A DNA stretch of 64,000 nucleotides from NCBI GenBank assembly GCA_002269645.1, contig NIVC01003039.1:1-64000 (forward strand). Direction: 5' to 3'. Of the stretch, positions 1 to 42,849 are shown piece by piece. The DNA comes from Macrostomum lignano (taxonomy: Eukaryota). Positions within the stretch are counted from its first letter, which is position 1; each line of letters starts with the position of its first letter. The notes under the pieces were generated by a model, which saw nothing but the letters and a program-made list of their open reading frames with translations, did not search any database and had not been told where the DNA came from. The translations under genes were made by a program, and so were the position numbers.

Positions 1-72
1 CTGATGATCTCGTCCTCCTCGGCATGTACTCCTCTTCGGCGTCGGAATAGGGCAGGTCCTCGTTGGTGACGT
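1..72 (-). CDS. RIMBP2: RIMBP exon (partial, truncated by window edge)
   Basis: CCCTCCAG acceptor, phase 1 matches the 1516 donor; [23 protein letters not shown]. Confidence 0.65.
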
Positions 73-3000
73 CTGGAGGGTTGGCAGTCAGTTCTATGCT
101 TGAGCGATTTCCGATGCATATCGTTGCAATAAGCTTAGTGAAATAAGACAACTGGCACTCTGATCCTGGCTTCTGTCATATGACTCCATGTCCCTGTCAT
201 ATGACTCCATGTCCCTGTCATATGACTCCATGTCCCTGTCATATGACTCCATGTCCCTGTCATTTGACTCCATGTCCCTGTCATTTGACTCCATGTCCCT
301 GTCATTTGACTCCATGTCCCTGTCATATGACTCCATGTCCCTGTCATTTGACTCCATGTCCCTGTCATTTGACTCCATGTCCCTGTCATTTGACTCCATG
401 TCCCTGTCATATGACTCCATGTCCCTGTCATATGACTCCATGTCCCTGTCATTTGACTCCATGTCCCTGTCATTTGACTCCATGTCCCTGTCATATGACT
501 TCATATGATCTCCTTAATCCCTGTCACTCTCATCTCACTAATCCCTTACACTCTGATCTCCTTAATCCTTGTCACTTTCATCTCACTAATCCCTGTCACT
601 CTCATCTCACTAATCCCTGTCACATCTCATCTCACTAATCCCTGTCACACTGATCTCACTAATCCCTGTCACACTGATCTCACTAATCCCTGTCACTCTG
701 ATCTCACTAATTCCTGTCACTCTGATCTCCTTAATCCCTGTCACTCTGTTCTCACTAATCCCTGTCACTCTGATCTCACTAATCCCTGTCACTCTGATCT
801 CCCTAATCCCTGTCACTCTGATCTCACTAATCGCTGTCACACTGATCTCCCTAATCCCTGTCACACTGATCTCCCTAATCCCTGTCACTCTGATCTCACT
901 AATCCCTGTCACACTGATCTCCCTAATCCCTGTCACTCTGACTCCCTAATCCCTGTCACTCTGATCTCCTAATCCCTATCACTCTGATCTCCCTAATCCC
1001 TGCCACTCTGATCTCACTAATCCCTGTCACTCTGATCTCCCTAATCCCTGTCACACTGATCTCCCTAATCCCTGTCACTCTGATCTCCCTAATCCCTGTC
1101 ACTCTGATCTCCCTAATCCCTGTCACTCTGACTCCCTAATCCCTGTCACTCTGATCTCCCTAATCCCTGTCACTCTGACTCCCTAATCCCTGTCACTCTG
1201 ACTCCCTAATCCCTGTCACTCTGATCTCCTTAATCCCTGTCACTCTGATCTCACTAATCCCTGTCACTCTGATCTCCCTAATCCCTGTCACTCTGATCTC
1301 CCTAATCCCTGTCACTCTGATCTCACTAATCCCTGTCACTCTGATCTCACTAATCCCTGTCACTCTGATCTCCCTAATCCCTGTCACTCTGACTCCCTAA
1401 TCCCTGTCAGTCTGACTCCCTAATCCCTGTCACTCTGTACCTCTGTCCCTGTACCCGCCCTGTCACTCTGTCCCTGTACCCGCCCGAAAGACAAGAAAAG
1501 AAAGCAAGAACTCACGAATTTCAGGTACAGAAACATTCTTTGACAGCCGTTTGTGACCTTGTCTGTAGGCTCTGTAATCTTCTGTAGGCGATTTGCCAAC
1601 CTGGAATAAAAAAAAACAATTTCATATAATATCAAATAAATGAAATGAAATGAAATAACTAAATTAAACAGGACAAGAAAAGTAAATCACTGAACAACAC
1701 CAAGTAGAAAAACGAATTATAAGAATAAAAATGACTACAAGCCAACCAACGCCACACTGAAGCCGTCACCATGATAGAAAATTTATTTATCAAGTGCCAT
1801 AAAACAGGTTCCTTGCCACCTCAACACGAAAGCTCCACCTCAGCTGGAGCCTTCGCCTCCTCCGGCGAGGTTCTTCGGGTCCAGCTTCTTGAACATGCTC
1901 GCCGTGCCCTCGCCGAACGCTTCAAATCTCTTCTTGGTGTCCCCACCGAAGGCGTCGAACTTTTTCTTAGTATCCTCGTTGAACGCTGCGAATTTCTTTT
2001 TATTTTCCTCGTTGAAGGCTTCGAATTTTTTTCGATTCTCCTCGTTCGCTTCGCGGATCTTTTCGCCCGTCTCATCAGCGATTTCCTCCACTTTTTCTTG
2101 GAATTCGTGGAAGCCTTTCTTTAGCCGGCCTAAGAAGCTCGAGTCCTCGGGATCGTTGGGATCGCCTTCGGCACCTTCAACACCTTCGGCACCTTCGGCA
2201 CCTTCGGCACCTTCAGCACCTTCGGCACCTTCAGCGCCTTCAGCAGCCGCAGCTTCAGCAGCCGCAGCTTCAGCAGCCGCAGCTTCAGCGGCCGCAGCTT
2301 CAGCAGCCGCAGCTTCAGCAGCCACGGCAGCCTCCTCTTCAGGCGTTGGCAGGGGTTCACCCCTAGGGCCCCGCTGCCTACCCTCGGCCGCTTCGTCGAC
2401 TGTCCGACCAAACTCGTCCAACAGTTCCCCACCGGGTCCTCGGACAACCTGTCCGGTGGATTTGTCTTCGAGCACGCCGAACTCGTTGACCCGCCAGCCG
2501 CACTCGGAGGCCAGCAGCTGACCGTTCGCCGGGTCGCGAGGCGCGCCGCACACTGGGCGACACCGAGCGTCGAAGTAGTGACCCTGGGCGTCTCTCAACG
2601 GCGCCCCGGTTGAGGCGTCGACCAGCAGGCCGAATTCGTTCTCGCGTCTTTCCGCCGAGTCGATAACGGCTTGACTGTCGGCGTCAACAAGCTGCTGTTC
2701 GTCGGCCAGACAGACTTTCCGGCAAGCCAGCGGCCGACCTCCGGCGTCGAGCAGCTCACCGCTTGGCCCAAGCACGGGCTGCCCGGTGTCCGAGCTGGTC
2801 AGCACCCCGAGCTCGTTCGGCTCGGCCGGCGACACCAAACTGCCGTCTGGGCGGCGGACTCCGTGCACCGGACGACATTCGGAGTCGAAAAACTCGCCGG
2901 ACGGACCTCGGACTGGCCGGCCGGACTCGTCCAGCAGGACGCCATTGTCGTTGACGCCGCCAGTTGGCAGCGGCGTGCCAGTCGACGCGTTCAACAGTCG

Positions 3001-6000
3001 GCCAGTGGACGCATCAAGCCGGGCCCGGCGACAATCGATTGGCCGGCCGGACGGGTCGAGCAGCTGGCCGTCCGGCCCCGGCTCGCTCAGCACGTCGTAG
3101 TAGTTTGGCTGCTGGGCCTCGTCGTCGACCAGCTGGCCGTTCGGCAGCCGCCGGCCGTAAACGACGGCGCCGTCGGGAGCGCCATAAAATTCTCCGTTTA
3201 GTCCGCGAAGCGGCAGCCCGCGCGAGTCGGCCAGCACGTTGAACTCGTTGGCCACGGCGTCGGCCACTTCGTCCGGCGAGTCAACACGACGACAGGCGAT
3301 TTCGGCTGCCGTTGCGTCCAATAGTTCGCGTCCGGTCGGCCCGGACAGTGGCCGGTTGTCTGTCCCGGACACTAACACGCCGAAGTAGTTGAGCTTTGGA
3401 GGCGGGTCGTCTGGCTTGCACGCCAGCAGACGGCCATCGTCGGGATGTCGGAGGCCGCCGAGAGCGGGCCGGCCGCCGGCAGCAAAGAACTCGCCGCGGC
3501 TGCCTCGCAGCGGCACGGAGCCGAAAGTCAGGATGCCGTGTGAGTTCGCCGCGGCGTCGGGAAACGCGTCCAACGGAGCAGCACCGTCCGGGACTGGCCG
3601 GCAGGCGATCGGCCGACCGTCCGAGTCGATTAGAGTGCCGTCCGGTCGGGCGAGAGCTAGGCCAGTGTCCGGATTAGCCAGGACGCCGAACCAGTTGACG
3701 GCGGGCGGCGGGTCGCCCAGCAGCTCGCCGTCGGGGCCACGCGGCCCGTAGACCGGCTGGCCGTTGGAGGAGAAAAACTCGCCAGACTGGCCTCGGATCG
3801 GGACGCCGTTTTCGTCGATTAGCACGCCGTTAGCGTTGACGCTTGTAGCGTCGCCGAAGGTCGTAGAATTATTATATCCATTAGACTCCGGTACAAGACG
3901 GCCGTCCGGGGTTCGAGTCGCGATTCGACAAAGTATGGGAGCGCCGTCTGGCGGAGATCGGAATTCGCCGCTCAGAGTTCGCAGCGGCTGACCGGTTGAG
4001 GGATCAACCAGGATGCCGAATTCGTTGGTTTGGGCCTGACATAAGGGGCGCGCATGCGGTAGTGGTGGTGGTGGAAGGGTGCTGGTTTAATGATGCAAGC
4101 TGTGCTTTGATTGACAGGCACGGAATAACGATGCTTCTATTTTTATGTGCAAAGGAGGATAAAAAGTTTATAGGGCAGGGATATAGGACAGGGAAACTAT
4201 GGGTAGGAGTTGGGGTGGGTGTTTTATACACCCAGAGGAGGCTATAGTGTACATTAGGGCAGGAAAACGAAGGGTAGGAGTTGGGGTGGATGTTTTATTC
4301 ACCCAGAGGAGGCTATAGTGTACATTAGGGCAGGCAAACTAAGGGTAGGAGTTGGGGTGGGTGTTTTATACACCCAGAGGAGGCTACGGTATATATTAGG
4401 GCAGGAACAGCGAAGCTAGGAGTTGGGGTGGGTGTTTTTTACACCCAGAGGAGGCTACAGTGTACATTAGGGCAGGAAAACTGAGGGTAGGAGTTGGGTG
4501 GGTGTCTTATAGACCCTGAGGAAGCTATAGTTTTACCTAAATGTAATAAGTAACAATATTGGCTTATATCGACTTATAGAAAACGTTTAAATAGCACAAT
4601 CTACAACAAAATAAACGAGAGTAAGTTGATATCTTTTGTGAAGTTAAGACACAATCTATACAACATCAAAAGGCTACCACAGACACGTGAGAAAGGAAAA
4701 ATCACTACGGATTCTAAGAAAGCTAAAATTGCTGCCAAATTGGTCTAGGCGTTACCCTCGGATTGCGCGAAGCGGACAACAGGTGCTGCCTGCGCAATCG
4801 ATGGAATTTCGATGGACTAACGCTGCGGCTTCGAATCATTCGGTGGTCCATCAGGGCTGAGGTGTTCGAGGCGGCGGCGGCGGCAGCGCCTCGCCTACTG
4901 GAGCGATGATGCTGGGAATGAGGCTGGCGCAGGCTGCCATGCTGAGGCCAGTCATCCTGCTGCTGCACCAGCTGCTGATGATGAGGCGGCAGCTGCCAGT
5001 CATCAAAGGAGGCCTGCATCTGCAGCTGCCTGTAACCGCCGCCGCCGCCAACAGTGTTGGCATTGTCGTACATGGAGGCGGGACCTGCAACGCCGTCGTT
5101 GGGATGACGAAGCAGGCCGCCCTGCTGCTGCTGCTGATGGTGATAAGCTTGATTATAACCGGCATGAACACCTGTTGGCGACCCGGTTAGATGAGGCGGC
5201 ATACCAGCGGTTCTACTGAACCTGGACGACGGGCCAAGATTCAAAGGCCTACCAGACGTGGAAAGTCTTTGTTGTTGCTGCTGCTGTTGTTGTTGCAGGA
5301 GCAGAAGTTGCTGCTGTTGCTGCTTTCCGAAAGCCAGATGACGCTGCTGTTTTTTTTGTTTAAAACAACGGCATTTGTTTGGCGTTGTAGGATTTGAGGT
5401 TTATGGGATTTGGGGATTTAAAGGGAACAGGGTGGGTGAGAAAAAGAATTATTTTTATCCCTTTTAGAAGCTCTTGTAAAATAAAAAGTAAAAGTAGTTT
5501 TAGTTCAAAGGAAGCAACGTCGCATATCGCCCATAAACCATAGGAGACCTATAGTTGCAAGATTACGAGTATTAGGATTAAGAATCTCTGTGAATTCCAA
5601 CATGCCGATAAAGTTACGAGTAATAAATAATTATGAATTAGCCTAAAAAAGCAAATTTTCTAAAATAAACGATTTTTTATGTATGATGCGCAATTGCGGC
5701 ACGATGGTTTTAAATAAAATTGACTTTCGATACATATCGGTACAACGAGAAAACTCTTTTTTTCGATGGTTAAGTTTTAAAAAATGCAATAATGACTTAG
5801 AATCGAGGCAATAGAAATTCTTTAATTTCGATAGAAATTAAGTCATTTATAAACAATCCTTTCTCCGATACATACCAGGAAGTTTGGCAATTCCTGAAAA
5901 CTGTTCTTTCGATACATATCGGAAAGTGTGGGAAATTCTTAAAAACTGCTCTTTCGACACATATCGGAAAGTGTGGAAAGTCTTGAAAACTGCTTTTTCG

Positions 6001-9000
6001 ATACATATTGGAAAGTGTGGGAAATTCTTGAAAACTGCTGTTTCGATACATATCGGTAGCAAAAATGAACTTACATCTTCTGGCCTAGGCAAATCGATAG
6101 ACGAATTAGCGGCAGACAGAGTCAGCGAGCACGGCGGGTCCGAGTCTAAACTCTCCACAGTCTGACCATTGTGAGTACCGACTGTGCGCACGGTCAGGAA
6201 GGCGGTGTGAGGTGGCAGGGAGTTCTGGGCGAGCAGGCAGTGATCTGAGTACGCGTCCAAGCACTCCGTGACCCGGTGCCTGCCGTCAGCGTACACTGCG
6301 TAGCCGGTGACCCGAACACCGTTGGACACGCCGTCGGAGTTGGCAACGGTGACCGGTAGCCAGGTGACTAGCAGGGAATGGTCCTGAGGCCCGGGCTCGA
6401 TTTGAACGTCCAGAGGAGCGTCGGGCAGGCCGCCGGGCGTGGTTCGAAACTCCAAGGTGGCGGTGAGGAGAGGCACGGAGGTGCCCGTAGTTTTCGGAGG
6501 CCTGGCCCGCACGCACACCTGTCAGAGAGAGAGAGAGAGAGAGGCGCCTTTGTCGAGTCGTACATTTTAAGTTGCACCTTTTGACAAAAAACGCCTGTAA
6601 ACTACTTATAGTAGAGTGCATTTGAACAAAATTACATGTACGTAAATGAGTATAGGGATATTTCAAAATGGTCATATGATGTATGAGATGATGTCTGACA
6701 CTGCCAATCAGATAAGATGTCAGGAAGGATGTCAGGATGTTAGATGAGATTGGGTAGAGTCAGGGGAGGTGAAAAAATACAAAGCATATTCATCATTAGA
6801 AGCCGCAAACCTTGTAAAGAGTGTCGGCAGTGAGACCGCTAATGAGCAGCTTGTAGTTGCCAGGCGGGCACTGTTTGTACTCTTTGCCGTTGACCGTCAC
6901 CACGTGTTGAAGGCTGGAAGCAGCCGGCAAGAACATGAGCACCGCTGAGCCTGGGGTTACGTTTGATACCTGGAGTTTTGTTAAAAATAACAGTGATATT
7001 ATTAGTTTATAAAAGTTTGTCATGGATGAGTGTTAATAAAAGGTTGTCAAGTTCTGTGATCATGGTCTGGTCATGGTCTCCAAGGGCTGACGGGGCTGTC
7101 AGTCTCCAAGGGCTAACGGGGCTGTCAGTCTCCAAGGGTTGTCAGTCTCCAAGGGCTGTCAGTCTCCAAGGGCTGTCAGAGTCTCCAAGGGCTGTCAGAG
7201 TCTCCAAGGGCTGTCAGAGTCTCCAAGGGCTGCCAGAGTCTCCAAGGGCTGTCAGAGTCTCCAAGGGCTGCCAGAGTCTCCAAGGGCTGCCAGAGTCTCC
7301 AAGGGCTGTCAGAGTCTCCAAGGGCTGCCAGAGTCTCCAAGGGCTGTCAGTGTCTCCCAAGGCTGACGGGCTGTCAGTGTCTCCCAAGGCTGACGGGCTG
7401 TCAGTGTCTCCCAAGGGCTGCCAGAGTCTCCAAGGGCTGTCAGTGTCTCCCAAGGCTGACGGGCTGTCAGAGTCTCCCAAGGCTGACGGGCTGTCAGAGT
7501 CTCCCAAGGCTGACGGGGCTGCCAGAGTCTCCCAAGGCTGACGGGCTGTCAGAGTCTCCGAAGGCTGACGGGCTGTCAGAGTCTCCCAAGGCTGACGGGC
7601 TGTCAGAGTCTCCCAAGGCTGACGGGCTGTCAGAGTCTCCCAAGGCTGACGGGCTGTCAGAGTCTCCCAAGGCTGACGGGCTGTCAGAGTCTCCCAAGGC
7701 TGACGGGCTGTCAGAGTCTCCCAAGGCTGATGGGGCTGCCAGAGTCTCCAAGGGCTGTCAGTCACCAAGGGGTGTCGGGGTTTCCAAAAAGGTCTGCAGA
7801 TGTGTGATGGGATCTGTAACAACAGACACGCTATCTCTAGACGAGACGAATCGGGATACTGTAAGGTCGCTAAAGCCTCGAATGATTATTTCGTAGAATT
7901 TTCAAAGGTTGCTCTTTATTCTCTATAATTTTTCGATCTAAGCTTTGTTAGGACCAGATATTGGTCATAAAATTTAATCCAACCTGTAGATAAGTAGGCG
8001 CCAGGTGCGAGTCGCGATCCTTGCCAGTCAGCAATGTACAGGCCGGGTCTTTGGATGTCAGACCCCTGGTAGTAACTGATCGCACACAGATCCTGTGCCT
8101 CTCCTTCGGATTAATACCTTCAATAAGTGCTTTAGTCTTCTCGCCGGCACTAACCGAGCACTTGAATTTGCCATCAACGTAGACGTGATAAGCAGATAAA
8201 GGGTCGTGCATCAGCACGCTAGTCGGATCGTGAGCCGGGGGTCGCCAGCCAATCACAATCGAGCTAGCCAGTTGTCTTTCTAAAGCTAGAAATCTAGGCG
8301 GAGAAACAGTATCATCCGAGAGACCCTCGGCTCGAATGATTTCCTCTTCGTAGGAGTAGGTTCCGCCCGTAGACAGCTGCTCAGCGGCTGGATAGGCCGA
8401 GGAGACCGGGTCGTAGCCGGAGAATCCAGTCTCAAATGCGGCAACATCGTCGTCTTGAGGAGGAGTGGTTGTTTTAGTGCGCGAATTTAAGAACTAAAAA
8501 AGCCAATAAAATGGAGATTGGGGAGATACAGGGAATTGGGTGGGTGTGTGCAGATAGGCAAGGAATGGAGACGAAAATGTGGGGGAGACAGGGAATGGGG
8601 TGGGTGCGCGCATAGAGTGGCAAGAAATGGAGATAAAAATGAGGGAGTGGGGAGACGGAATGGGGTGGGTGCGCGCATAGAGTGGCAAGGAATGGCGACG
8701 AAAATAATGGGGTGGGGGAGACAGGGAATGGGGTGGGTGCGCGCATAGAGTGGCAAGGAATGGCGACGAAAATAAGGGGGTGGGGAGACAGGGAATGGGG
8801 TTGGTGCGCGCATAGAGTGGTAAAGAATGGAGACGAAAATAAGGGGGTCGGGGAGACAGGAAAGGGGGTGGGTGCGCGCATAGAGTGGCAAGAATTGGAA
8901 GTGAAATTGGGGTGGTAGGGAGACAGAGAGTGGGTGGATGCACGTATAGAGTGGTAAGGAATATAACAAGGACGACTTAAGTAGGAAGGGAAACCTCGTT

Positions 9001-12000: not shown

Positions 12001-14403
12001 CGCTAATTTTTACAGTCAACTAAAGTCAACTCTAGGTCAATTTATACTACTCATACACTGTGTGTTTTCAGTAGTAGTTACGTGTGTTTTTTCAAGATTT
12101 CTTATCTACTAATGCAATAAAAATAACCAACACACACCTCGAAATAGTTGCTAAATACCAAAAGGTAGCAATAAAAACTACGAAAAGGTTAAATAGAGTC
12201 TTGTCAACCTGATCGCAGTCCCCGTGCACAAGGACATAGTCGCCCACGGAGAGCGTCAGCTCATCCTCGGGTCGGTCGTTAGGAGAGCAAGAGTACGGAT
12301 CGTAGCTGTACTTGGCCACGAATGCCCGTTTACCTGGATCCGACTGAGTTAGTTTTTTGGTCCGCAGAAATTTCGTTTTAGTTTTAGTTTAGTTTGATTG
12401 AAAACAGTACATGTGGTTTGTAATAATTATAATACCATTTTAGGGATAGTAAGTAGTCATCTGTTACATTTAAAATAATTTTATCAAAGCTAATAGTACA
12501 ATTTAAATTTAATAAACGCTGCACAGAATTTATATCAAGAAATATAATTATTTGGTTACAGAGACAATCAAGGTATAATAGATATAAGAAAGAATAAAAA
12601 TGCAAAGCACATGCACTCTCACACGAAAAAAGTAGGAAAACACGAGAGAATAGATACAAGAAGGAAGAGAGACTAGACACCTAGACACTGTGGAAGAGAT
12701 ATAGGGAGAGAGAGACTAGACTGTGAGGGAGAGAGAGGAGAGAGACTAGACACTGTGAGGGAGAGAGAGGAGAGAGACTAAACACTGTGTGGGGAGAGGG
12801 GAGAGACTAGACACTGTGAAAGAGATAGAGGGGAGAGATACTAGACACTGTGAGGGAGATAGAGGAGAGAGACTAGACACTGTGAGGGAGGGAGAGGAGA
12901 GAGATTAGACACTGTGAGAGGGAGAGAGGAGAGAGACTAGACACTGTGAGGGAGGGAGAGGAGAGAGATTAGACACTGTGAGAGGGAGAGAGGAAAGAGA
13001 CTAGACACTGTGAGGGGGGAGAGGAGAGATACTAGACACTGTGTGGGGAGAGAGGAGAGAGACTAGACACTGTGAGGGGGAGAGAAGAGAGACTAGACAC
13101 TGTGAGGGGGAGAGAAGAGAGACTAGACACTGTGAGGGAGAGAGAGTAGAGAGAATAGACACTGTGAAAGAGATAGAGAGGAGAGAGACTAGACACTGTG
13201 AGGGGAGAGAGTAGAGAGACTAGACACTGTGAAAGCGATAGAGAGGAGAGAGACTAGACACTGTGAGGGGGGAGAGGAGAGAGACTAGACACTTTGAGGG
13301 GGAGAGATAGGGAGAGAGACTAGACACTGTGAAGGGAGAGAGGAGAGAGACTAGATACAGACAGACTAAGACTCCAGTAGAGCAAGGTAATGAATGTATA
13401 CAGGACGCAAGAGATGCAAGCAGATGCGAGAGCTACACACATGGGGAAATGCAATCCGTAATCCTAATTATCCCGGTGTCTCACCAGCCTATTAACACAG
13501 CGCTCCAGGCAAACTGATGGTCATTCCCAGACTCCTGAGTTGATAAACTCATCCGGAAGCCTCAGGCTACGGGTAGAGGCACTTTTTTCATACGGGGCGT
13601 CTATCCAATAACCCAACCAACTGCGAGAGATTAAGATTTCCCACCGCTACTCAGCCTGAGAAGTGCTCATTCTAGTGAGCACACTCGAACTAATGGAACT
13701 AGCCTATATACATATATGGGAATAGAATTACTTGGGCACAGCGAGTAACCTCTTAAAGAGAAAAAACAAGACAGGGGTTTTATTGCTAGAAATCTCACTC
13801 TCTGTCTCTCTCTCTCTCTCGCCCAAGCTTTGATTGACTGCCAACCCTCCCCACAACCCACTACCAAACTCTCGCATGAGCTCGCTTCTGCCGGGCATTG
13901 CTCAACAAGGGGCTTTATATATCAACAGGATATCTGGGCAACCCCCGTCCCACTCTCTTCTCCCTTCTCATCCGCCTAGAGCCTTCCCGCACACTACTGC
14001 TCTAATCTCTAATTCCAGATTGCTCCTCCAACGATTGCTTCTCCGAAGCTTATCCCTGATCCTTATTCTCTCCCACCCACCCCGCTGTGCCCGCCTAAAC
14101 AGGCATCTGCCAGCACTGCGGAATAGCAGAGGGACACAGGGCCTTCGTCTCAGCCAATTATCTATAACTCAGAGGGGGGCGAGGAGGCGAAAGCCAGAAT
14201 GAAAACTGTGCATGATTTGGAGGATTAGCTTGGGATGAAGGAAGCTGGAGAGGAACAGGCTGCAATTCTGGGTGGCCGCAGCACGCAAAGATGAAGGGGA
14301 AGGCAGAGTGGAAGGGAAAGCGTTCTGTGCCAGCTCGTATATAATATTTATAGATAATAAAGTCATCGGTAGAGCAAAGCTGCTTAAATAGATAAATAAA
14401 TAA

Positions 14404-14447
<44 letters not shown>

Positions 14448-14532
14448 ATAGATGATAGATAGATAGATAGATAGATAGATAAATAGATAGACAGACAGAT
14501 AGATAGATAGATAGATAGATAGATAAATAGAT

Positions 14533-14609
<77 letters not shown>

Positions 14610-14638
14610 ATAGATGATAGATAGATAGATAGATAGAC

Positions 14639-14696
<58 letters not shown>

Positions 14697-14702
14697 ATAG
14701 AT

Positions 14703-14777
<75 letters not shown>

Positions 14778-17230
14778 GGATAGATGATGGATAGCAGAAA
14801 ATGCCTAGGCACTCTGATCTCAGTAACCAATACCCAGACTAAGAGCAGAGCTAATTGAGCTGATCGCATTAGTGGACACAATCAATAGAAAAAATACAAC
14901 ACGGAACAAACTTAATACATTCAGTCTCATAAAGCTTAAATTGACCGACCGCAGCAAGTACTGTAATAACTAATGCTAAATGCTAAGACTAAAGAACAGA
15001 GCGAGTTACCAATTGCTACACACAGAAGAAAAACAAATAAAATCAATTAATAAGTAAACGCTAATTTTATGTATCCCATTGACTCACCTTGGGATAACTT
15101 TGCAAAGCCGCTTGCGATAAAGAATAGTGAGCACTGTTGCTATGCTGCATGGAGTGATGAGGCTGAGCCCGGGAGGCTGTCGGCCCACCGTATCCCATCG
15201 AAGAATGATGTTGAACGGGCGGCGGAGGCTGGGGCGCTGAATGCAACTGAGGCGAAGTTCTTCTGTGATGGTAATCGGCGCCACCACCACCGGAATGATG
15301 GCCAGGATTATGGGTTGAGCTTGGGAAATAATCCTCTGCGGAAAGAGTTTTAAATTCAGGCGTGTATACATTGTGTACAGGTTGTAGAGGTTGGTGGGGA
15401 GTGTATGTACATTGGGGTAGAAGTTGTAGAGGTTGGTGGGGCGTGTGTGTACATTGGGCAGAGGTTACAGAGGTTGGTGGGGAGTGTGTGTACATTGGGC
15501 AGAGGTTACAGAGGTTGGTGGGGAGTGTGTGTAAATTGGGCAGAGGTTACAGAGGTTGGTGGGGAGTGTGTGTACATTGGGCAGAGGTTACAGAGGTTGG
15601 TGGGGAGTGTGTGTACATTGGGCAGAGGTTACAGAGGTTGGTGGGGAGTGTGTGTACATTGGGCAGAGGTTAAAGAGGTTGGTGGGGAGTGTGTGTACAT
15701 TGGGCAGAGGTTACAGAGGTTGGTGGGGAGTGTGTGTACATTGGGCAGAGGTTAAAGAGGTTGGTGGGGAGTGTGTGTACATTGGGCAGAGGTTAAAGAG
15801 GTTGGTGGGGAGTGTGTGTACGAGTACATTGGGCAGAGGTTACAGAGGTTGGTGGGGAGTGTATGTACATTGGGGTAGAGGTTGGAGAGATTAGTCGGGC
15901 GTGGATGTACAGAGGGGGTAGAGGCTGTAGGGATTCGGCTGTCGGTAGCGCGTGTACATTAGTGTTGAGGGCTGGTAGGAATATGCAGGTATGTACTTTA
16001 ACAACCCCCAAACCCCTAGGATGTCATCAGAATAATCAGTGAAGTATAGATAAATTATTTAGGCTTTCTATTATAAAACTGGGTAACCAAATTTCTAAGT
16101 ACAAGCCCAAAACCGATACAAGGACTCAATCAGTAATTAAAAGTTCAGGAAAAAATCCACTAAACTAGGGGAACTGAAAACCGCGAACAAAAATCAACAA
16201 ATGACCATTTTCCAGCTAAACACTTCACCTCAAAAAACACGGGAAAGGGAAGGCGACAAACGGCACTATTGAAAAATCCTCACGCCACAAAACTATCCAT
16301 CAACACAACAGGTCTACTGAAGATGAATAAAAACCGACGACACACCTGGACAAACACGAAAATCCAACAGGAAAGCAAGGCACGCCACTTAAAGTACACG
16401 AAGAAATAAATAACGAGTGATCCTCTCGACCAGGAAATTAAAATTTTACTGCCACCTTGTGCGGAGCAAAATTTGTTTACCAGAACGAAGCATCAAATCG
16501 GAAAACAGGTCGTCTACGAAAGAATAAGTGGCCCAGGGCAGGCCGCTGCCGCCGTTGCGTACGGGCGGCGGCTGCCCGGCGGGAACTGAGCCTGCGAGCA
16601 GGGGGTTGGGGACTGCGCTGTGCCTCCTGCGCTTCATTGTCTGGCTGTCATTGAGCTGTCATTGAGCCGATCTGTCTGACAGCTTGTCTGACCTGTCAGT
16701 CTGTGTGACCTGTCTGTCTGTCTGTCAGCCTGTGTGGTCTGTCTGTCTGTCAGCCTGTGTGGTCTGTCTGTCTGTCAGCCTGTGTGGTCTGTCTGTCTGT
16801 CGGCCTGTGTGGTCTGTCTGTCTGTCAGCCTGTGTGGTCTGTCTGTCTGTCGGCCTGTGTGGTCTGTCTGTCTGTCAGCCTGTGTGGTCTGTCTGTCTGT
16901 CAGCCTGTGTGACCTGTCTGACCTATCAGCCTGTGTGGTCTGTCTGACCTGTCAGTCTGTGTGACCTGTCTGTCTGTCTGACCTGTCAGTCTGTGTGACC
17001 TGTCTGTCTGTCTGTCAGCCTGTGTGGTCTGCCTGTCTGTCAGCCTGTGTGGTCTGTCTGTCTGTCTGTCAGCCTGTGTGGTCTGCCTGTCTGTCAGCCT
17101 GTGTGGTCTGCCTGTCTGTCAGCCTGTGTGGTCTGTCTGTCTGTCAGCCTGTGTGGTCTGTCTGTCTGTCAGCCTGTGTGGTCTGTCTGTCTGTCAGCCT
17201 GTGTGGTCTGCCTGTCTGTCAGCCTGTGTG

Positions 17231-17417: not shown

Positions 17418-19523
17418 TACTGACTCGGTGCAAAACTGTCCGAGAATTCCCGTTCAAGAAACTTGCATCAATACAAATATCGAACACATCACGCACAGGG
17501 CAGTTGCAGAGCAACTGTGCGAATGAAAACTTCAGACCCAGCAAGCAGCTTACGAGGCTGGAAGCCGTTAGAGCTGGCCATGTAGTCGGGCCCCACAACT
17601 GTCGGTGTTGAGTTGTGCTGCGGCGGCTGCTGCTGCATCGGCGCAACGCCGAGGCCTCGAAGTTCGTCATATTTCTGCTTTTTCTTGGCCGCCTCAAGCT
17701 CCAGCATCAGCTCCTCGTGGCGCAGCGACTGCAGCTCGGCGCGCTTCTCCAATTCGCGCAGTTGCGTCTGATGAGATTAGATATCATGGAGAGATGAGAT
17801 AAGTGTGAGATTAGATACCATGGAGAGATGAGGTAAGTGTGAGCTTAGATACTATGGAAATATGGGTAAGTGTGAGATTGATACCATGGAGAGATGAGAT
17901 AAGTGTGAGATTAGATAGAATGCGGAGATGAGATAGATTAGATATTATGGAGAGATAAGATAAATGAGATTAGATATCAAGGAGAGATGAGGTAAGTATG
18001 AAATTAGATATCATAGAGAGATGAAGTAAGTACGAGATTAGATATTATGGAAAGATGAGGTAAGTATGAGATTAGATACGCGCTCGTATCATGGAGAGAT
18101 GAGAGGTCATGGAAAGGTGGGATAGTATTAGATTAGATACCATGGAGAGATGAGATAAATATGAGATTAGATACCATTGAGAGATGAGGTAAATATGAGA
18201 TTAGATACCATGGAGAGATGAGATAAATATGAGATTAGATACCATGGAGAGATGAGATAAATATGAGATTAGATACCATGGAGAGATGAGATAAATATGA
18301 GATTGGATATCATGAAGAGATGAGGTAAATGTGAGATTAGATACCATGGAGAGATGAGATAAATATGAGATTAGATACCATGGAGAGATGAGATAAATAT
18401 GAGATTAGATACCATGGAGAGATGAGATAAATATGAGATTGGATATCATGAAGAGATGAGGTAAATGTGAGATTAGATATCACATGGAGAGACGAGGTAA
18501 GTGTGAGATTAGATATCATGGAGAGACGAGGTAAGTGTGAGATTAGATATCATGGAGAGACGAGGTAAGTGTGAGATTAGATATCATGAAGAGATGAGAT
18601 AAATGTGAGATTAGATATCACATGGAGAGACGAGGTAAGTGTGAGATTAGATATCATGGAGAGATGAGAGGTCAAAAAGAGGTGGGAAAGTAAGAGATTA
18701 CATACTACGTAGAGATGATATTGTTAGATAATATACTCGTAGAATAGAGGTGGGATAATATGCGACTAGTTGAAGTCGATTACGAGACAAGATCTCTGTT
18801 TTAGTAAGAGACTGGATCGACTAATAATGGTATATTAGAGTGATACTCGGACAGACTGGCCACACTAATAGCATATCCCAAATGCACTATTGACAGCCTC
18901 ACGGCACACTGACACCGGATACCATGTATGACGGGAAATCCGTGCCTCAATCCATCTCACTCTCAGCTAGCAGCTGAACTCAAGCGAGCCAATCTTTTCA
19001 AACTAAACTCACCTTCAGCGAGTCCACAGTCTCTTCATTGGCCCTGGCCGCGTAATTATCCGGCCCCTATGGACAGATTGGCGATAATTATTATTAGTAG
19101 CATTATATATAGTAATACGAGCCTAGCAATAGTTTGCTAGTATTAGAATAATCATGATAATGGTGTTTATCTAAACTATGTACACACACTAATACATAAT
19201 TAATCAAACAGCAGGCCTGGCCTCCAATTCAAATCAACCCTTCGACTCTACACAGCAGCCGAAATCATAGCAGCTCTATTGAAACAGAACGGGCAGGGTC
19301 GCCACCGCCAGTTGTCACAAGCACAAAGAGAATGGAGCGACCGACGAGTCAATATTAGTTGTGGGGATTCGAGCTGAGGACGGATAAGTTGAGAACCAGG
19401 CGCTGCCTGCGGAGATAACAGAGATGCAGGCGAGGGAGCTGCAGGAAGTATGGAGAGAGATCGGGTAGAGTGGGGTGAGAATAACTAAAGAGCTTAGAGA
19501 CAGACAGAAAAACAGACAGACAA

Positions 19524-19574
<51 letters not shown>

Positions 19575-19577
19575 CTA

Positions 19578-19610
<33 letters not shown>

Positions 19611-19613
19611 CTA

Positions 19614-19650
<37 letters not shown>

Positions 19651-19677
19651 CTAAGACAGACACTAAGAAAGACACTA

Positions 19678-19726
<49 letters not shown>

Positions 19727-19733
19727 GTCAGGC

Positions 19734-19804
<71 letters not shown>

Positions 19805-19817
19805 AAGACAGACACTA

Positions 19818-19910
<93 letters not shown>

Positions 19911-22900
19911 GCAGATGCAGTGAAGCAGTGTATGGAACAAAATAAGGTCATCGTGAACGGGGCAGCGAAATGAGCCGCGAGCAAGCAGAAGCCCCAGTTT
20001 ACTCAGATGAGAAGCGGGCACGTGCGCAGATACAGCAGGCAGGCGCCCAGATCAAGTATGATGATACACAGCGCCCGCAAAAACCTACTCAAGCATCGAT
20101 AGCTCCGTCTGACCAATTTTTTTTCTCTCTCTCTCTCGCCCCCCCCCCCACACCCATTGCAGCCTCCCGGGACTGAAACTACATCAAGGACATTCGTTGT
20201 CGCATTCTAAATTATGCATAGAGAATCAACATCCAGTGGTGGCGGGGGGGGGGGGTTGCTGGGCTAGCAACAGTGGCCGGCAAGGCCTGACAGCCAGACG
20301 GTTTAAACAGCCGATAGCTTAAGCCCAGGGAAACGAATGACCAGGAAGCACCGGGCGTAGAGAAAATTGAAAGATAAATCTTCCAACAGCTAGGCGCAAT
20401 GTCATGTGAGAACGAGAGGGATCGCGCGGCTCGCAGGGGACACAAGTCGGCATGGGGATCGAGGGAGTAAAGAGGGAAGAAAGCTGTGCAGAAATCGAAT
20501 ATCAGCCTCTAGCAAAGCGACATCTTGTCTTAGTGTTTCTGCATCTGTCCTTCCGTCTCCGGGAGGATATTTGGAAAAACTACAGTCACATGAATCTCCA
20601 GCTCTGAAGACTGGCCGACAGATTGCTTGGCTTACAACATTGGAGATGGCATATCTAGCATTGTGATCCGTCAGAACTGGGAACCAGAGGGGTGACAGTC
20701 GGACAGAACTGGACAAGAAGAGCATTCATGTAGTTGATGGGGCATGATGGAGAAAGAGGATCTGATTTACAGACCTGAGCTTCTGAAAGACTCAAGGTGA
20801 GGGAGTGAGACAGACGAGAAGGGAAGAGAGCAGCTGAGAGCAGTGTTTACTGCCTGGCCTGAGCTCAGAGACTGCGCACGCTGCTCAGATGGCCAAAAAG
20901 GAAGGCAGCGTGACAGGTGACTCGGGGTCAGTGTGGCATTCTAAATAGCAAGGCCAGACATTTTGACTTTCTGAGTTCCGACAGTCAGATCTAATTGTAA
21001 GACAGTTCAGCTTTTCAGAAAATATTATTATCATAAATTTTAAAACTACTTTCTCACAATCAGAAGATAGAAGCTCTAAAAAACTATGTAGCCGTAGCTG
21101 TGGGAAATATATTCGGAAACGGCATGCCCAACAACTAAGGAAATACTTCATCCTTTGCCTCTCCTCCCTCCTGCCCTTCCCTGCCTCTCCTCCTGCCCCT
21201 CCCTGCCTCTCCCTGCCCCTCCCTGCCTCTCCCTGCCTCCCCTCCTGCCCCTCCCTGCCTCTCCCTGCCTCTCCCTGCCCCTCCCTGCCTCTCCCTGCCT
21301 CCCCTCCTGCCCCTCCTCCTGCCCCTCCCTGCCTCCCCTCCTGCCCCTCCCTGCCCCTCCCTGCCTCTCCCTGCCTCCCCTCCTGCCCCTCCCTGCCTCC
21401 CCTCCTGCCCCTCCCTGCCCCTCCCTGCCTCCCCTCCTGCCCTCCCTGCCCCTCCCTGCCTCCCCTCCTGCCCCTCCCTGCCTCCCCTCCTGCCCCTCCC
21501 TGCCCCTCCCTGCCTCCCCCTCCTGCCCCTCCCTGCCCCTCCCTGCCTCCCCTCCTGCCCCTCTCTCCCTACCTTCCTCTCTGCTCTTCCCGCTTTTTCT
21601 GTCCCCCATTCGTCCATGCCTGCTGTATATTGTACATAAATCTCACCCTTCATCTCCTCCTATGCCTCTTCTCACCCCTTTCTCCTCTCCTTCCTCAATC
21701 ATTCCTTTATCCTCACCACCACCTGTCCTCTTAGCCTTTGTTTGCTCTCCTGTCTCTATCCACACCAGGCGCGACCTCCCGCAGAGCCCAATTAGCATAA
21801 TGATGAAGGGTGGCTCTCAGCTGCCGCAGTAGCCGTAAAAAAGCAACTGTCTTTTTAAAAAATTAAAAGAAAAGTTTTTGCTCCCTGGAGTGTGAAAATT
21901 TGGGCGATAGTGAAAAACGTTAAAGCACTTTCCGTTTCCCCAGGGTCTCAGCTCAGGCTAAGTAAAGCAACTTAAACTTATTATATAAAAAGAATCGCAC
22001 ATTCATTTTCGTAATGGCAGTTCACCATCTCTCACTAACAGACCTTCAGCCAATTTGAAATCAAAGCCGTATGTAAAAAGCATGAGGAGTTCATAATAAA
22101 TTAGGAAATAGCCATCACCCAAACTTAACAGCAAAAGGCTTAAGAAAATCTTTTGGCTATAATAATTATTTCTAACCTCTCTTTACTCTTTGCGAACCTG
22201 CTAGTCATGCCTTAATCGTGATACTGATCGACATAATTACCAAAATTTTAGGGGCTTAGAATCGAAATCTCAAACTGCAAAGAAGATTTTAATTTAGAAT
22301 TTTTCTCTTTTCAATATCTAATGAGACAGAAATTTCTTTCTGTTCCTCTAGAAGAAGCGCGTCTTGAGCAGAAACGGCGGCTACCTTCTTCATATAGAAT
22401 GACTCGCGAGATTTCTCGTCAATCAGGTGTTTTAAACGCGCGTGCTCGGACTCCAGCTCGCGTTTCTTCTCGAGCGACTCGCGCATGTGCTAAAAATATA
22501 ATTTTAAATGGTGACTCATTATATAATGGTAGCTAAAAATAGAATTTTAAATGGTGACTCATCATATAATGGTAGCTAAAAATATAATTTTAAATGGTGA
22601 CTCATTATATAATGGTAGCTAAAAATATAATTTTAAATGGTGACTATTATATAATGGTAGCTAAAAATAGAATTTTAAATGGTGACTCATTATATAATGG
22701 TAGCTAAAAATAGAATTTTAAATGGTGACTCATAATATAATGGTAGCTAAAAATAGAACGGCGGGTGATTAGTCACCGCGAAATGATCTAAAAGTCAGCA
22801 ACTGTTTATAATGGACGTCGCTAAAGGAAGGAAAGCGATTTTTAGGATAATTTAGCAACTATCACCTTGTCGATGTTCTAATTTTCATCATATTGAAGAA

Positions 22901-25102: not shown

Positions 25103-28100
25103 GAACAGACGCGGAGAGCCAGGCAGAGACAGTGAGCTCTCAAAAGCCACCGTCTCGAGTTTAAAGAACCCGGCGCTCTGCTGCCCTGCAGCTGCGGTTG
25201 AGCTGAGGAAATCGCATTAACCCACTAGCAAACAGGCTGTCTCTTCCCCACTTCCTCTGCTTTTGTAGCTCCCACAGTGCACTTAGTTTAATAGAACAGA
25301 AGTTATATGATAGTTTAGTCTGATAGATAAAGTACGCAGTAATATTTCTCTGATAAATGCAATAAATGATATAACTAGTGTGGTATATAAAAGCCAATAT
25401 ACAGTAGTACATGTTATCTTCTCTATATTAGATCTCAATCCTATATATCCAAGATGTCTATCCTAGATGTCGATCCTCTCTATCCTAGATATCTATTCTC
25501 TCTATCCTAGATATCTATCCTCTCTATCCTAGATATCTATTCTCTCTATCCTAGATATCTATCCTCTCTATCCTAGATATCTATCCTCTCTATCCTAGAT
25601 ATCTATCCTCTCTATCCTAGATATCTATCCTCTCTATCTTAGATATCTATCGTCTCTATCCTAGATATCTATCCTCTCGATTCTATATGTCTTTTCCTTT
25701 CCATCCTAGATGTATATTCTCTCCACCATAGATGTATATTCTCTCCATCCTAGATGTATATTCTCTCCATCCTAGATATATATTCTCTCCATCCTAGATG
25801 TATATTCTCTCCATCCTAGATATATATTCTCTCCATCCTAGATATATATTCTCTCCATCCTAGATATATATTCTCTCCATCCTAGATATATATTCTATCC
25901 ATCCTAGATATATATTCTCTCCATCCTAGATATATATTCTCTCCATCCTAGATATACATTCTCTCCATCCTAGATATATATTCTCTCCATCCTAGATATA
26001 CATTCTCTCCATCCTAGATATATATTCTCTCCATCCTAGATATATATTCTCTCCATCCTAGATATATATTCTCTCCATCCTAGATATATATTCTCTCCAT
26101 CCTAGATATATATTCTCTCCATCCTAGATGCATTTTCTCTCCATCCTAGATGTATATTTTCTGCATTACCGATGTCTATCCTCTATCCTATAATGTCTAT
26201 CGTATTTATCCTAGATGTCTGTTATATCTATTCTTAACAGTCTTTTTTAGTTATATTCTTAAAAGTCTATTCTCACTCATCTATGTGTCCATACGTGCAA
26301 TTCTCTCTATTTAACGCTTGTAGATGTCTAATCTGTTAAAAAAGCAACTAAAAACCAATGGAGCACTACTCACCAGATAGTTCGCCTGTCTGGCCTCCTC
26401 TCTGAGCTGCTCAAGTTCGGCTTCTAAATCGCGTTTCGACTGTTCAACCTGAGCAGCCTCCTCTGTGAGCAGTTTCAAACGCTCGGAGGCTGGGACTTCG
26501 TCTGATAGCAGGTCCTTATGAGTTTTTTAGGGCAACAGAGAATAGCGCTTTGATAACAGAATGAAACAGTTAAACTACAATTGTTTCCTGTTGTTAGGAC
26601 GCAAATTCTATACTGGATTAAATAATAAAATGCACACGCACTAAGCTCAGAGCAGCTAAGAGCTCAGAGGGGGTGGGTACTTGGATTGGGAGTAAATTGG
26701 ATAGGGAAAGAATGGGAAGAGAGGAATGATGGGGTTGCTGCTCTGCGATGGGGAGACTGAGAATACGCAGCAAGCCAAGCCTCCTTTCGCGTACGCAAGC
26801 AACTGTACTGCAAGGTGGCTCAAAAGCAGGCTGCTCTCTCAGTTGCAGACTCAGGCCGACTGTACATTCATTCTCCGCACCCACCTCAGCGAGAGGGGAA
26901 GAGAGGGGGGAGAGGAGCAGGGAAGGGAGAGTCTGGAGAGCCCGATCAATCAATACATTTGGTATAGAAAGTGGGGAGAGAGGAGAGGATAGGGCAAGGC
27001 GATTTGAGAAGGCGGTTCTAGAATACTCGTAGAACTCTGAGCTCACTCCCTCCCTCCCTGCTTGGCCCCTAGCCAAAAGGCTCAGCCAAGCGGTTAGTGG
27101 CTTCCCAACCGGCAGCAGCAGCAGGCCGTGTGGAGTCTCAAGGCGAGCTTTTCTTGGCCGGGGTAAAAGTTGGGAATTAGCACGGGGGGGCTGTAGGAGG
27201 ATGGGGTGAAGAAAGTTCACACTACAGGAGGCGCACGAGCATCTCGGAGACTAGGATGGGGAGGCCGGAGAGGCTGAGGGGAGAGAAAAAAGGGGGGAGG
27301 CCGAAAACGGTGGCAGACAGAGATATTCCCTAACCATAATCCCCAATGCGGAGCGCTCTCCCTATTCCCCCTGGGAGCAGAGTTGTGTATAGAAATGAAT
27401 GGGAAGGCGATTCCAAGCCTTTGCAGATGCCCAGATTAGCTTTAACCCGGCCTGAAATCCCTCTTCAAACACATCTCGAAATCCCCTTAGATAGCGCCAC
27501 AGAGAAGGGTATTGGTTTCCAAATTTTCAAATCATTTAAATAGAAATTAAAACAAATATAAAATCCGATTACGCGTGTACATATTTAGCAGACTTAAGCT
27601 AATGACTGTTTGAGATCAACAAATAAAAAGCAAATGTATCTCAAAATGAAAATGGCACTGCCAATATCTAGTGGCAAATGTATCTCAAAATGAAAATGGC
27701 ACTCGCCAATAGCTAGTGGCAAATGTATCTCAAAATGAAAATGGCACTCGCCAATATCTAGTGGCAAATGTATCTCAAAATGAAAATGGCACTCGCCAAT
27801 ATCTAGTGGCAAATGTATCTCAAAATGAAAATGGCACTCGCCAATATCTAGTGGCAAATTTATCTCAAAATGAAAATGGCACTGCCAATATCTAGTGGCA
27901 AATGTATCTCAAAATGAAAATGGCACTCGCCAATAGCTAGTGGCAAATGTATCTCAAAATGAAAATGGCACTCGCCAATATCTAGTGGCAAATGTATCTC
28001 AAAATGAAAATGGCACTCGCCATTATCTAGTGGCAAATGTATCTCAAAATGAAAATGGCACTCGCCATTATCTAGTGGCAAATGTATCTCAAAATGAAAA

Positions 28101-41575: not shown

Positions 41576-41769
41576 AATATACTAAATCTCTAATCTATAT
41601 ACTAAAAATAGTTTGTCGGTATTAGGTATCTATATCTATCTACATGTATCTAGATATCTACATTTTTAGTATATGGGATGTGATCGATTTCAGAAATTGA
41701 TTCTAAAAACTAAAACCAGTCAGTACGCGAACGATCTGGCCATCTGAGTCAGCTCAAGCCCAAGGTACT

Positions 41770-42100: not shown

Positions 42101-42249
42101 CTCACTCTGAAAAAAACCCACTGTTAATTGCAGAGCAGCCATCAAAGAAACAGAACCCGTTTTACACACACAAGCTCATTAGTGAATGAATTTTGCGCAA
42201 TTGAGTTGCAGTAATGACCAGATGAGCAATGACCAGTTAAACAAAGACT

Positions 42250-42780: not shown

Positions 42781-42849
42781 GCAGCTGTACGCCGTCGGAC
42801 TTGCTGCTGGGCCATGGTCAGTTGCTACGGCTCCTGCTGCTGCGGCTGC

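Follow-up and report, generated by a model that had tools for sequence, protein, structure and literature searches.

The RIMBP host gene and its splice sites

Read on the minus strand of the window (the whole 64,000-nt stretch of DNA analysed here), the locus contains a gene with three FN3 exons and a Gln-rich linker exon, and in the intron that follows the linker lies a long open frame. The host features around it are these:

5850 to 8493, minus strand: three RIMBP FN3/Ig exons, which identify the host (Pfam PF25523 and Macrostomum lignano fragment alignment)
4757 to 5283, minus strand: Gln-rich RIMBP linker exon after the FN3-3 exon; it ends at base 4756 in a phase-0 donor
4036 to 4755, minus strand: intron 4756->4035, or outron if the exon is trans-spliced (sequence reading)
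4035 to 4037, minus strand: splice acceptor, phase 0, TTATGTCAG/GCC (AG 4037-4036, first exon base 4035)
1516 to 1600, minus strand: next RIMBP exon, 85 nt (T-rich tract and CAG/G phase-0 acceptor; GTGAGT donor, phase 1)
1 to 72, minus strand: beginning of the RIMBP exon after that, which keeps phase with exon 1600-1516 and continues past the window edge

Host exon 6521-5850 (minus strand) matches the Ig_RIMBP2 family (Pfam PF25523) at E 3.7e-30 and 104 bits, and exon 8493-7951 (minus strand) gives a second match at E 8.9e-7. The middle FN3 exon, 7032-6799, found no match in Pfam and lies inside the alignment (94% coverage, 48% identity) to an M. lignano FN3 fragment, the best relative of the host FN3 region. 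The original prediction called the host a RIMBP, and the stronger Ig_RIMBP2 match and the fragment alignment agree; judged from these sequence matches, the host gene is a RIMBP in which the three central FN3/Ig_RIMBP2 domains are present. Upstream of the FN3 array, exon 12388-12095 may encode part of SH3-1 (Pfam SH3_9 weak, E = 0.087). Similar to Drosophila Rbp and vertebrate RIMBP1/2, the host follows the canonical order, from coiled-coil exons at the N-terminus through a candidate SH3-1 exon to three FN3/Ig_RIMBP2 domains. RIMBP domain order is conserved across animals, FN3-3 and SH3-2 being joined by a linker that is long and variable, and SH3-2/3 have been the main focus of past work.

The linker's open frame (5400-4726) continues the reading frame from the FN3-3 exon, whose phase-0 donor is at 6075, and the 5' boundary of the linker exon is uncertain, with several possible phase-0 acceptors at about 5330-4911. 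Its donor on the minus strand reads ...AAT CCG AGG / GTAACG (GT 4755-4754, phase 0); this AGG/GTAACG site is the top-scoring donor in the 3' half of the exon and the final GT ahead of an in-frame stop 10 codons on. No AG other than acceptor 4035, which reads ...CCCCTTATGTCAG / GCC CAA ACC, keeps frame with a phase-0 donor in the stretch from the upstream stop (4089-4087) to the first repeat of the open frame, and the 65-70% pyrimidine content upstream of it compares with 55-95% for the other acceptors of the gene. Between the two sites the intron contains 4.9 tandem copies of a 71-nt unit (4184-4531), with TATAAAA-like motifs, and a single AATAAA at 4299-4294; a scan of 4036..4755 for mini-exons that start at an ATG and end in a usable phase-0 donor found none. 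The two short exons 1600-1516 and 72-1 are the post-linker host exons visible within the window; homology support for exon 1600-1516 was not found. It had been proposed that donor 4756 has two phase-0 partners, at 4035 and at 1600, and every one of these positions could be read directly on the minus strand; the exon at acceptor 1600 is in phase with donor 4756 and then joins the exon at 72 in frame.

A coding 3'-terminal exon within the RIMBP intron

The open frame runs from 4035 to 1843 on the minus strand (731 codons; 2,196 nt with its stop) and comprises the following:

2371 to 4026, minus strand: repeat region, aa 4-555, 11 units of about 46-50 aa (sequence reading and AlphaFold2)
2161 to 2340, minus strand: low-complexity spacer, aa 566-625, (AAEAA)n then (GAE)n (sequence reading)
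1879 to 2136, minus strand: C-terminal amphipathic helix, aa 634-719, about eight 11-residue repeats (11-mer register and AlphaFold2)
1840 to 1842, minus strand: stop codon TGA of the 731-codon frame (sequence reading)
1742 to 1787, minus strand: likely poly(A) signals: AATAAA at 1787-1782, then a GU-rich stretch at 1757-1742 (sequence reading)

Altogether 748 codons are open; in 500 shuffles the mean was 171 and the longest frame reached 401. The frame has a GC of 0.735/0.53/0.733 at codon positions 1/2/3, similar to the host exons, and its synonymous-codon usage (RSCU) correlates with theirs at r = 0.69. The 11 repeats share 38% identity at the protein and 50% at the DNA level, and their conserved Gly, Pro, Arg and Leu positions are written in mixed synonymous codons. 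With 748 open codons, host-like codon usage and old repeats in mixed synonymous codons, 4035-1840 on the minus strand is therefore genuine protein-coding sequence. The earlier description of a 2196-nt stop-terminated exon with AATAAA 53 nt downstream reads as it was given, and the GU-rich element that comes after the AATAAA (1787-1782) reads GTGTGGCGTTGGTTGG and occupies 1757-1742; on the same strand AATAAA is present in just 3.6% of 100-nt windows.

We consider it improbable that the frame is a silent relic or pseudo-exon, that is, a fragment of a once-coding repeat gene left behind in the intron that is neither spliced nor translated any more. The missing start codon and the absence of a homolog or annotated protein with this module from the databases searched would suit such a fragment; however, the 748-codon frame is intact with zero stops or frameshifts over 11 diverged repeats, its codon usage is host-like, and none of the signals (acceptor, stop, AATAAA, GU-rich element) is damaged or out of place.

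No in-frame ATG occurs before residue 713, aa 1-555 contain no Met at all, and the lone Met is near the C-terminus. Nor does the open frame contain an internal phase-0 donor, every good GT in it being phase 1. As phase-1 internal donors clash with acceptor 1600, the 731-aa frame cannot be an internal exon, and with no usable ATG, no intronic first exon and no in-phase donor it must be a terminal exon, reached through a splice at 4035. Thus 4035-1840 is a 3'-terminal exon within the RIMBP intron 4756-1600, entered at the phase-0 acceptor 4035, and it has the layout of an alternative last exon: an in-frame acceptor, its own stop and a poly(A) signal, all ahead of exon 1600. It is highly improbable that the module is constitutive in RIMBP, whether as an internal exon joined onto 1600 or as the sole C-terminus of the RIMBP of this species. 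The variable FN3-3/SH3-2 linker would leave room for a constitutive module, and SH3-2/3 do not appear within the window; however, exon 1600 read after a phase-1 donor runs into a stop, and the splice signals of exons 1600-1516 and 72- are strong, both exons being in phase with donor 4756.

Composition and relatives of the 731-aa module

The repeat region is built from one N-terminal unit and five super-repeats, each about 100 aa long and 39-50% identical to one another, with the unit consensus NxFGVLxDxxTGxPLRGPxGEFFDxxGRPVxxRRxPDGxLL. AlphaFold2 models one super-repeat, given a five-row alignment, entirely as strands with a mean pLDDT of 73.7, and the region is predicted from this model to be rich in beta-hairpins. 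At the C-terminus AlphaFold2 places a helix at 634-716 with a pLDDT of about 80; its hydrophobic moment is 0.34 at 98 degrees versus 0.10 +/- 0.05 in shuffles, with a narrow hydrophobic face of Phe and Ala, Lys at the flanks and Glu/Asp opposite.

The original prediction called the module unrecognised, and this was borne out in every library searched: searches of 1.84 billion representative proteins, of Pfam and of PDB found no family or homolog of the 731-aa sequence. The super-repeats have no match in Pfam, a profile search of the module against PDB sequences returned a best E of 0.54, and none of the RIMBPs in the databases matched with a tail of this type. Whichever gene the exon belongs to, the evidence for an orphan repeat family in the 731-aa protein is good, and searches of about 1.8 billion representative proteins detected no relatives of it.

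Known families of similar composition were considered and rejected. A collagen triple-helix falls short (PF01391, 16.9 bits versus a cutoff of 27.2) and there are only about 9 GAE triplets; apolipoprotein A1/A4/E (PF01442) scores 14.4 bits versus a cutoff of 90, and the phasin PhaP 13.1 bits versus 28.3. Similar to the class A amphipathic 11-mer helices of apolipoproteins A/E, perilipins, alpha-synuclein and LEA proteins, the C-terminal segment has an 11-residue periodicity over about 86 aa, a moment that is high at about 98-100 degrees and a long helix predicted with confidence; however, it belongs to none of these families and has its own distinct 11-residue repeat sequence. Known beta-hairpin repeat folds (cell-wall-binding/CROP, Rhs-YD) were likewise rejected, the best Foldseek E being 0.14 with a TM of about 0.2. 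The top Foldseek matches, all non-significant, were themselves hairpin-repeat proteins, and the module resembles glucansucrase domain V, clostridial toxin CROPs and Rhs/YD solenoids in its hairpin repeats, at a level of match that is non-significant. In sequence, the actinobacterial-looking protein P0002, which falls in no Pfam family, has a short 'NGELLGPDGQPL(R/L)GP' tandem repeat that resembles the repeat of the module, and the two share the core motif G-E-(L/F)-(L/F)-x-x-x-G-x-P-(L/V)-x-G every 12-16 residues. The match is marginal (phmmer E = 8e-4 in 1.84e9 proteins), and the module units are longer than those of P0002, with a 46-50-aa and an about 100-aa repeat. The resemblance to P0002 and to hairpin solenoids is probably convergent.

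A proposed alternative C-terminus for RIMBP

The sequence is compatible with both an alternative RIMBP tail and a separate nested gene, which leaves the original prediction partly supported. That prediction took the exon as an alternative terminal exon of RIMBP: its coding nature, its terminal position and its unrecognised module all hold, and 4756 is a candidate partner of 4035 that agrees with it in phase. Since most donors of the host gene are phase 0, this frame match is weak evidence. Donor 4756 is nevertheless the likeliest partner, being the nearest upstream cis donor on a transcript that must cross 4035 to reach the downstream RIMBP exons; moreover, it is a decent phase-0 site, and the context of acceptor 4035 is typical of the gene. 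Tentatively, then, exon 4035-1840 may well be an alternative last exon of RIMBP that is cis-spliced from donor 4756. An isoform of '~2080 aa' had been proposed, which is of the right order, a rough exon sum giving about 1,400 aa upstream rather than an exact gene model.

With a 4756->4035 junction the isoform would retain the coiled coil, the presumed SH3-1 and all three FN3 domains, and would lose the exons from 1600 onwards, the expected place of SH3-2/3. Its replacement tail would consist of the beta-hairpin repeat array of about 550 aa, the Ala/Glu and Gly-Ala-Glu spacer and the 86-aa amphipathic 11-mer helix, whereas known RIMBPs have SH3-2/SH3-3 at their C-terminus. These C-terminal domains bind RIM, Ca2+ channels and Unc13A via PxxP motifs; Aplip1 is a further ligand of SH3-II/III, and the N-terminal region of RIMBP binds the BRP scaffold (PMC7337501). 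In the proposed working, the N-terminal part of the isoform would still dock into the active-zone scaffold, and RIM, Ca2+ channels and Unc13, which SH3-2/3 bind at PxxP motifs, would no longer be coupled to the protein. For the amphipathic helix, binding to a membrane or lipid surface, e.g. vesicles, is conceivable; this functional reading is predicted from a model of moderate confidence and the helical-moment calculation. If such an isoform exists, it would be a natural RIMBP with the docking half kept and the channel- and RIM-coupling half swapped for a new module, a ready-made tool to separate the two RIMBP functions and a case of lineage-specific active-zone rewiring.

A possible spliced-leader start for the same exon

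The original prediction had named a nested trans-spliced gene as the scenario that would overturn it, and the sequence agrees equally well with this scenario and with the isoform. Here a spliced leader (SL) would be trans-spliced at 4035 and the AUG at the leader's 3' terminus would serve as initiator, giving a 732-aa cytosolic product unrelated to RIMBP function, from a transcript that starts in the 720-nt upstream stretch or is excised from the RIMBP precursor. We regard such an independent gene as possible but on the whole doubtful. The closest relative of the host gene, whose 48% identity is the basis for presuming a flatworm source, is from M. lignano. The SL of that species ends in ...TTGCATG, occurs on about 30% of genes (PMC8629364) and is conserved in other Macrostomum species (PMC10468722), and the terminal AUG is conserved among flatworm SLs (PMC12582326) and documented as an initiator (PMC8629364, PMC9851317, PMC12582326). 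The frame itself supplies no start ATG and its acceptor is exactly phase 0, so that an SL/4035 junction (...GCATG/GCC CAA) is in frame; furthermore, the exon has its own poly(A) signal, and as the first repeat begins 3 codons past acceptor 4035 a RIMBP-derived linker is not needed. More than 40 Schistosoma mansoni cDNAs need the SL AUG as initiator, according to Cheng 2006 as cited in PMC9851317, and similar to those genes the frame here lacks an initiator, starts at the acceptor and is in frame with an AUG-ending leader. Unlike them, its acceptor is within a same-strand intron of a host gene with an in-frame cis donor 720 nt upstream, and with so good a donor on the same precursor at least partial cis-splicing at 4035 is expected. 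Against an independent gene there is also the result that no SL gene or SL sequence, that of M. lignano included, was found in the window, an Rfam search likewise being empty; no promoter is identifiable for it, and the acceptor TGTCAG is an incomplete match to the YTNCAG trans-acceptor motif of M. lignano. If a nested SL-AUG gene is present, it would show how in trans-splicing animals ATG-less intronic frames come to be fused into host gene models.

In a flatworm, acceptor 4035 may receive a spliced leader in addition to the RIMBP donor. Dual use of the site, with cis-splicing giving the RIMBP fusion and trans-splicing a stand-alone protein, would yield two products from one exon, and both junctions are in frame. 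In parasitic flatworms acceptors are extensively shared by cis- and trans-splicing, with internal SL sites confirmed by RT-PCR (PMC12582326); however, these belong to another clade than the one presumed here, and dual use shares the limits of both the fusion and the nested-gene readings. We judge it quite unlikely. The fullest form of the fusion reading, which we think unlikely as a whole, would be a lineage-specific RIMBP isoform of a flatworm-like animal in which SH3-2/3 are replaced by a hairpin array and a membrane-binding helix, the same exon perhaps being freed by SL trans-splicing under cis/trans competition.

The RIMBP host gene

On the minus strand, stop-to-stop frames give the following order for the gene in which the 731-codon open frame studied here (the module) is found:

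ATG at 36443, minus strand: first exon
Between the first exon and the SH3-like exon, minus strand: a series of coiled-coil exons
12388-12095, minus strand: SH3-like exon
After the SH3-like exon, minus strand: three FN3 exons, then the Gln-rich linker exon

That this gene is RIMBP, as originally predicted, follows from Pfam PF25523 (RIMBP2-like Ig domain), which scores 3.7e-30 on 6521-5850 and 8.9e-7 on 8493-7951, and from a search with the FN3 region, whose best match, a Macrostomum lignano fragment (48% identity, 94% coverage, E = 3e-60), clearly outranks the RIMBPs of vertebrates and arthropods. The DNA thus probably comes from a flatworm or a related animal, one that is not represented in the protein databases. 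This fragment could not be traced to any contig in a comparative-locus look-up. The SH3-2/3 exons would lie past the left edge of the window. We found that almost all confidently placed donors in the coiled-coil part (15088-35736, minus strand) are of phase 0, so that exon skipping or alternative joining would usually be in frame and arguments from phase compatibility are weakened. Almost every RIMBP intron also carries long minisatellite arrays (21-mer x15.8, 24-mer x39, 71-mer x4.9 and others; examples at 173-504, 506-1437, 4184-4531, 7200-7800, 14200-14900, 19400-20000 and 27600-28400), a genome-wide habit of the species that is not tied to the module.

Boundaries of the module exon

The minus strand was read directly over 1-5400 and translated over 4200-1837, and the coordinates predicted for the module exon and its flanking sites all proved correct (a slash marks the splice junction):

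Last exon base 4756, minus strand: donor of the Gln-rich exon, AAT CCG AGG/GTAACG, phase 0
First exon base 4035, minus strand: module acceptor, CCCCTTATGTCAG/GCC CAA ACC
4035 to TGA 1842-1840, minus strand: module frame, 731 codons, 2,196 nt including the stop
1787-1782, minus strand: AATAAA, 53 nt past the stop
1757-1742, minus strand: GU-rich element (GTGTGGCGTTGGTTGG) downstream of the AATAAA
1600-1516, minus strand: next RIMBP exon, with a T-rich tract and CAG/G acceptor and a /GTGAGT donor, starting in phase 0

The donor at 4756 is the best in the 3' half of the Gln-rich exon, and its GT is the last one preceding an in-frame stop 10 codons downstream. Upstream of the acceptor at 4035 the pyrimidine content is 65-70%, which falls inside the range seen at other acceptors of the gene. 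The AATAAA motif occurs in only 3.6% of 100-nt windows on the minus strand. Reading the strand likewise confirmed that exon 1600-1516 joins in frame to the exon beginning at 72.

The repeat region of the product has no methionine, the only one in the module being at aa 713, and since the intron at 4036-4755 holds no mini-exon that combines an ATG with a usable phase-0 donor, the start must come by splicing. A first exon of the module's own within this intron was rejected: we found only three ATG...GT combinations, and each has either a poor donor or a geometry that is impossible. The sole AG that keeps the frame with a phase-0 donor in the stretch from the upstream stop (4089-4087) to the first repeat (4026) is 4037-4036; the AG at 4082, the alternative acceptor, lies out of phase and opens into a short frame. 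All reasonable GT sites within the module frame are of phase 1 and entry into exon 1600 in that phase meets a stop, so onward splicing from an internal donor was rejected and the module exon is, judged from its splice sites, a terminal exon. With exon 1600 available in frame as the other continuation, it is very improbable that the module is a constitutive part of RIMBP.

The module frame stays open for 17 codons upstream of the acceptor (4038-4086, minus strand) and there reads as a PxxP-like string, which is probably a coincidence given that it overlaps the C-rich tract of the acceptor. Where the donor at 4756 is left unused the RIMBP frame stops after 10 more codons (4723-4756, minus strand), and about 430 nt beyond that stop lies an AATAAA (4294-4299, minus strand) within a copy of the 71-nt repeat. 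It is conceivable that RIMBP has a short 3' end that retains the intron, in which case the position of the module exon would be like that of a downstream cistron.

Coding status of the frame

Against the 748 codons of the open frame, 500 shuffles gave 171 on average and 401 at most. Its GC content at codon positions 1/2/3 (0.735/0.53/0.733) has the same pattern as in the first exon and the FN3-3 exon, and its RSCU correlates with that of the host exons at 0.69, both of which argue against a foreign origin; a bacterial or transposon origin was rejected on this host-like codon usage together with the lack of prokaryotic or viral homologs among the representative proteins searched. The repeat units share on average 38% identity in protein and 50% in DNA, values that mark them as old, and their conserved Gly, Pro, Arg and Leu residues are written with mixed synonymous codons (e.g. 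GGC/GGG/GGA/GGT and CGA/CGC/CGG/CGT/AGA), which we read as a signature of selection on the protein and not of a recent DNA repeat. By sequence criteria the frame is thus coding on four counts, namely openness, codon usage, repeat structure and synonymous-codon mixing. Set beside these features, the idea that the exon is a silent relic appears quite improbable.

Anatomy and relatives of the product

The repeat array at residues 4-555 consists of 11 units, each 46-50 aa long, which group into five super-repeats of ~100 aa with 39-50% identity, and is followed by a low-complexity spacer of (AAEAA)n then (GAE)n at aa 566-625 and by an 86-aa run of 11-residue repeats at aa 634-719. At 98 degrees this last stretch has a hydrophobic moment of 0.34 (shuffles: 0.10 +/- 0.05), and single-sequence AlphaFold2 places a long helix over it (pLDDT ~80), the model being poor outside this C-terminal helix. 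When one super-repeat was modeled with its five internal copies as the alignment, AlphaFold2 predicted an all-strand, hairpin-rich structure (pLDDT 73.7). Foldseek gave no significant match to that model (best E-value 0.14), the top, non-significant matches being hairpin-repeat proteins, among them glucansucrase domain V, clostridial toxin repeats and Rhs. The module has no signal peptide.

The original description of the module as unrecognised held up in every search we made. A word-indexed search with all 731 aa gave no match, although low-complexity words may have crowded its list of 8,000 candidates, and an exhaustive phmmer run with the 555-aa repeat region as query, covering 1.84e9 representative proteins, returned two marginal matches only (E ~1e-4), both simple-repeat resemblances. 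A profile of the 11 repeat units matched nothing, and no match above threshold came from Pfam, from PDB sequences or from a profile search of PDB. The window's own ORF likewise has no record in the collections searched; these evidently lack the source genome and its close relatives, and the absence of homologs is therefore weaker evidence than it appears. One of the marginal matches, an actinobacterial-looking protein (P0002), carries at residues ~510-740 a 12-13-aa tandem repeat, NGELLGPDGQPL(R/L)GP, whose short motif also forms the core of the repeat in the module; it belongs to no Pfam family and is probably a convergent hairpin repeat.

Proposed uses of the exon: cis-spliced isoform or trans-spliced nested gene

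The original prediction was that splicing from 4756 to 4035 yields a RIMBP that ends in the module in place of SH3-2/3, and a cis route of this kind would indeed give that isoform. RIMBP transcription has to run past the acceptor at 4035 en route to the exons at 1600 and 72, exposing it to the donor at 4756 on every precursor, so some fusion transcript is expected if the acceptor works. The host, the coding frame and the terminal exon of that proposal stand; the phase match between 4756 and 4035 is weak evidence, as most confidently placed donors of the gene are of phase 0, and a spliced-leader (SL) route is equally in frame. We hold the cis isoform only tentatively, at somewhat under an even chance, as the main use of the exon. 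Literature searches turned up no usable account of a RIMBP isoform that lacks SH3-2/3.

The M. lignano SL, CGGTCTCTTACTGCGAAGACTCAATTTATTGCATG, is found on ~30% of genes (PMC8629364) and is conserved in other Macrostomum species (PMC10468722), as is its terminal AUG across flatworm leaders (PMC12582326); in S. mansoni, according to the citation of Cheng 2006 in PMC9851317, the SL AUG is the initiator for mRNAs with no start of their own. Joined at 4035, the leader reads ATG/GCC CAA ACC, in frame, and an ATG-less frame with a poly(A) site of its own, opening three codons ahead of the first repeat, has the look of a nested gene dependent on the SL AUG. However, the flatworm affiliation of the DNA is only inferred, neither the M. 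lignano SL sequence nor any Rfam family was found in the window, the fit of the acceptor to YTNCAG, the trans-acceptor motif of M. lignano, is only partial, and such a gene has no demonstrable promoter, leaving trans-splicing at 4035 as the exon's only use rather unlikely. In flatworms, acceptors that serve both cis- and trans-splicing are widespread, and there are true internal SL sites as well (PMC12582326), which makes the two readings compatible; an acceptor at 4035 put to both uses is, in our estimate, improbable.

Taken together, the observation is confirmed and its interpretation as a RIMBP isoform is partly supported: the exon falls within known kinds, either as an alternative last exon or as a nested gene that relies on the SL, and that it carries an orphan repeat protein is well-supported. 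RIMBP SH3-II/III bind Ca2+ channels, RIM, Unc13A and the transport adaptor Aplip1, and the N-terminal region provides the link to the BRP scaffold (PMC7337501). The cis isoform would keep scaffold docking, lose the SH3-2/3 contacts and gain a hairpin-repeat array and a class-A-like amphipathic helix, which could associate with the surface of a membrane or lipid. Made as a free protein, the module would instead be a repeat protein of the cytosol whose tail binds membranes.

Other features of the window

An ALIX/PDCD6IP-like gene occupies the opposite strand at 48673-63332:

48673-49104, plus strand: BRO1 domain (2.4e-36)
59162-59755 and 61130-61666, plus strand: ALIX V-domain exons

Several open frames of 110-240 aa at 40207-43228 (minus strand) have no Pfam match, and 42881-43228 (minus strand) seems, by eye, to resemble ORF2 of a non-LTR retrotransposon at its Cys-rich C-terminal end.
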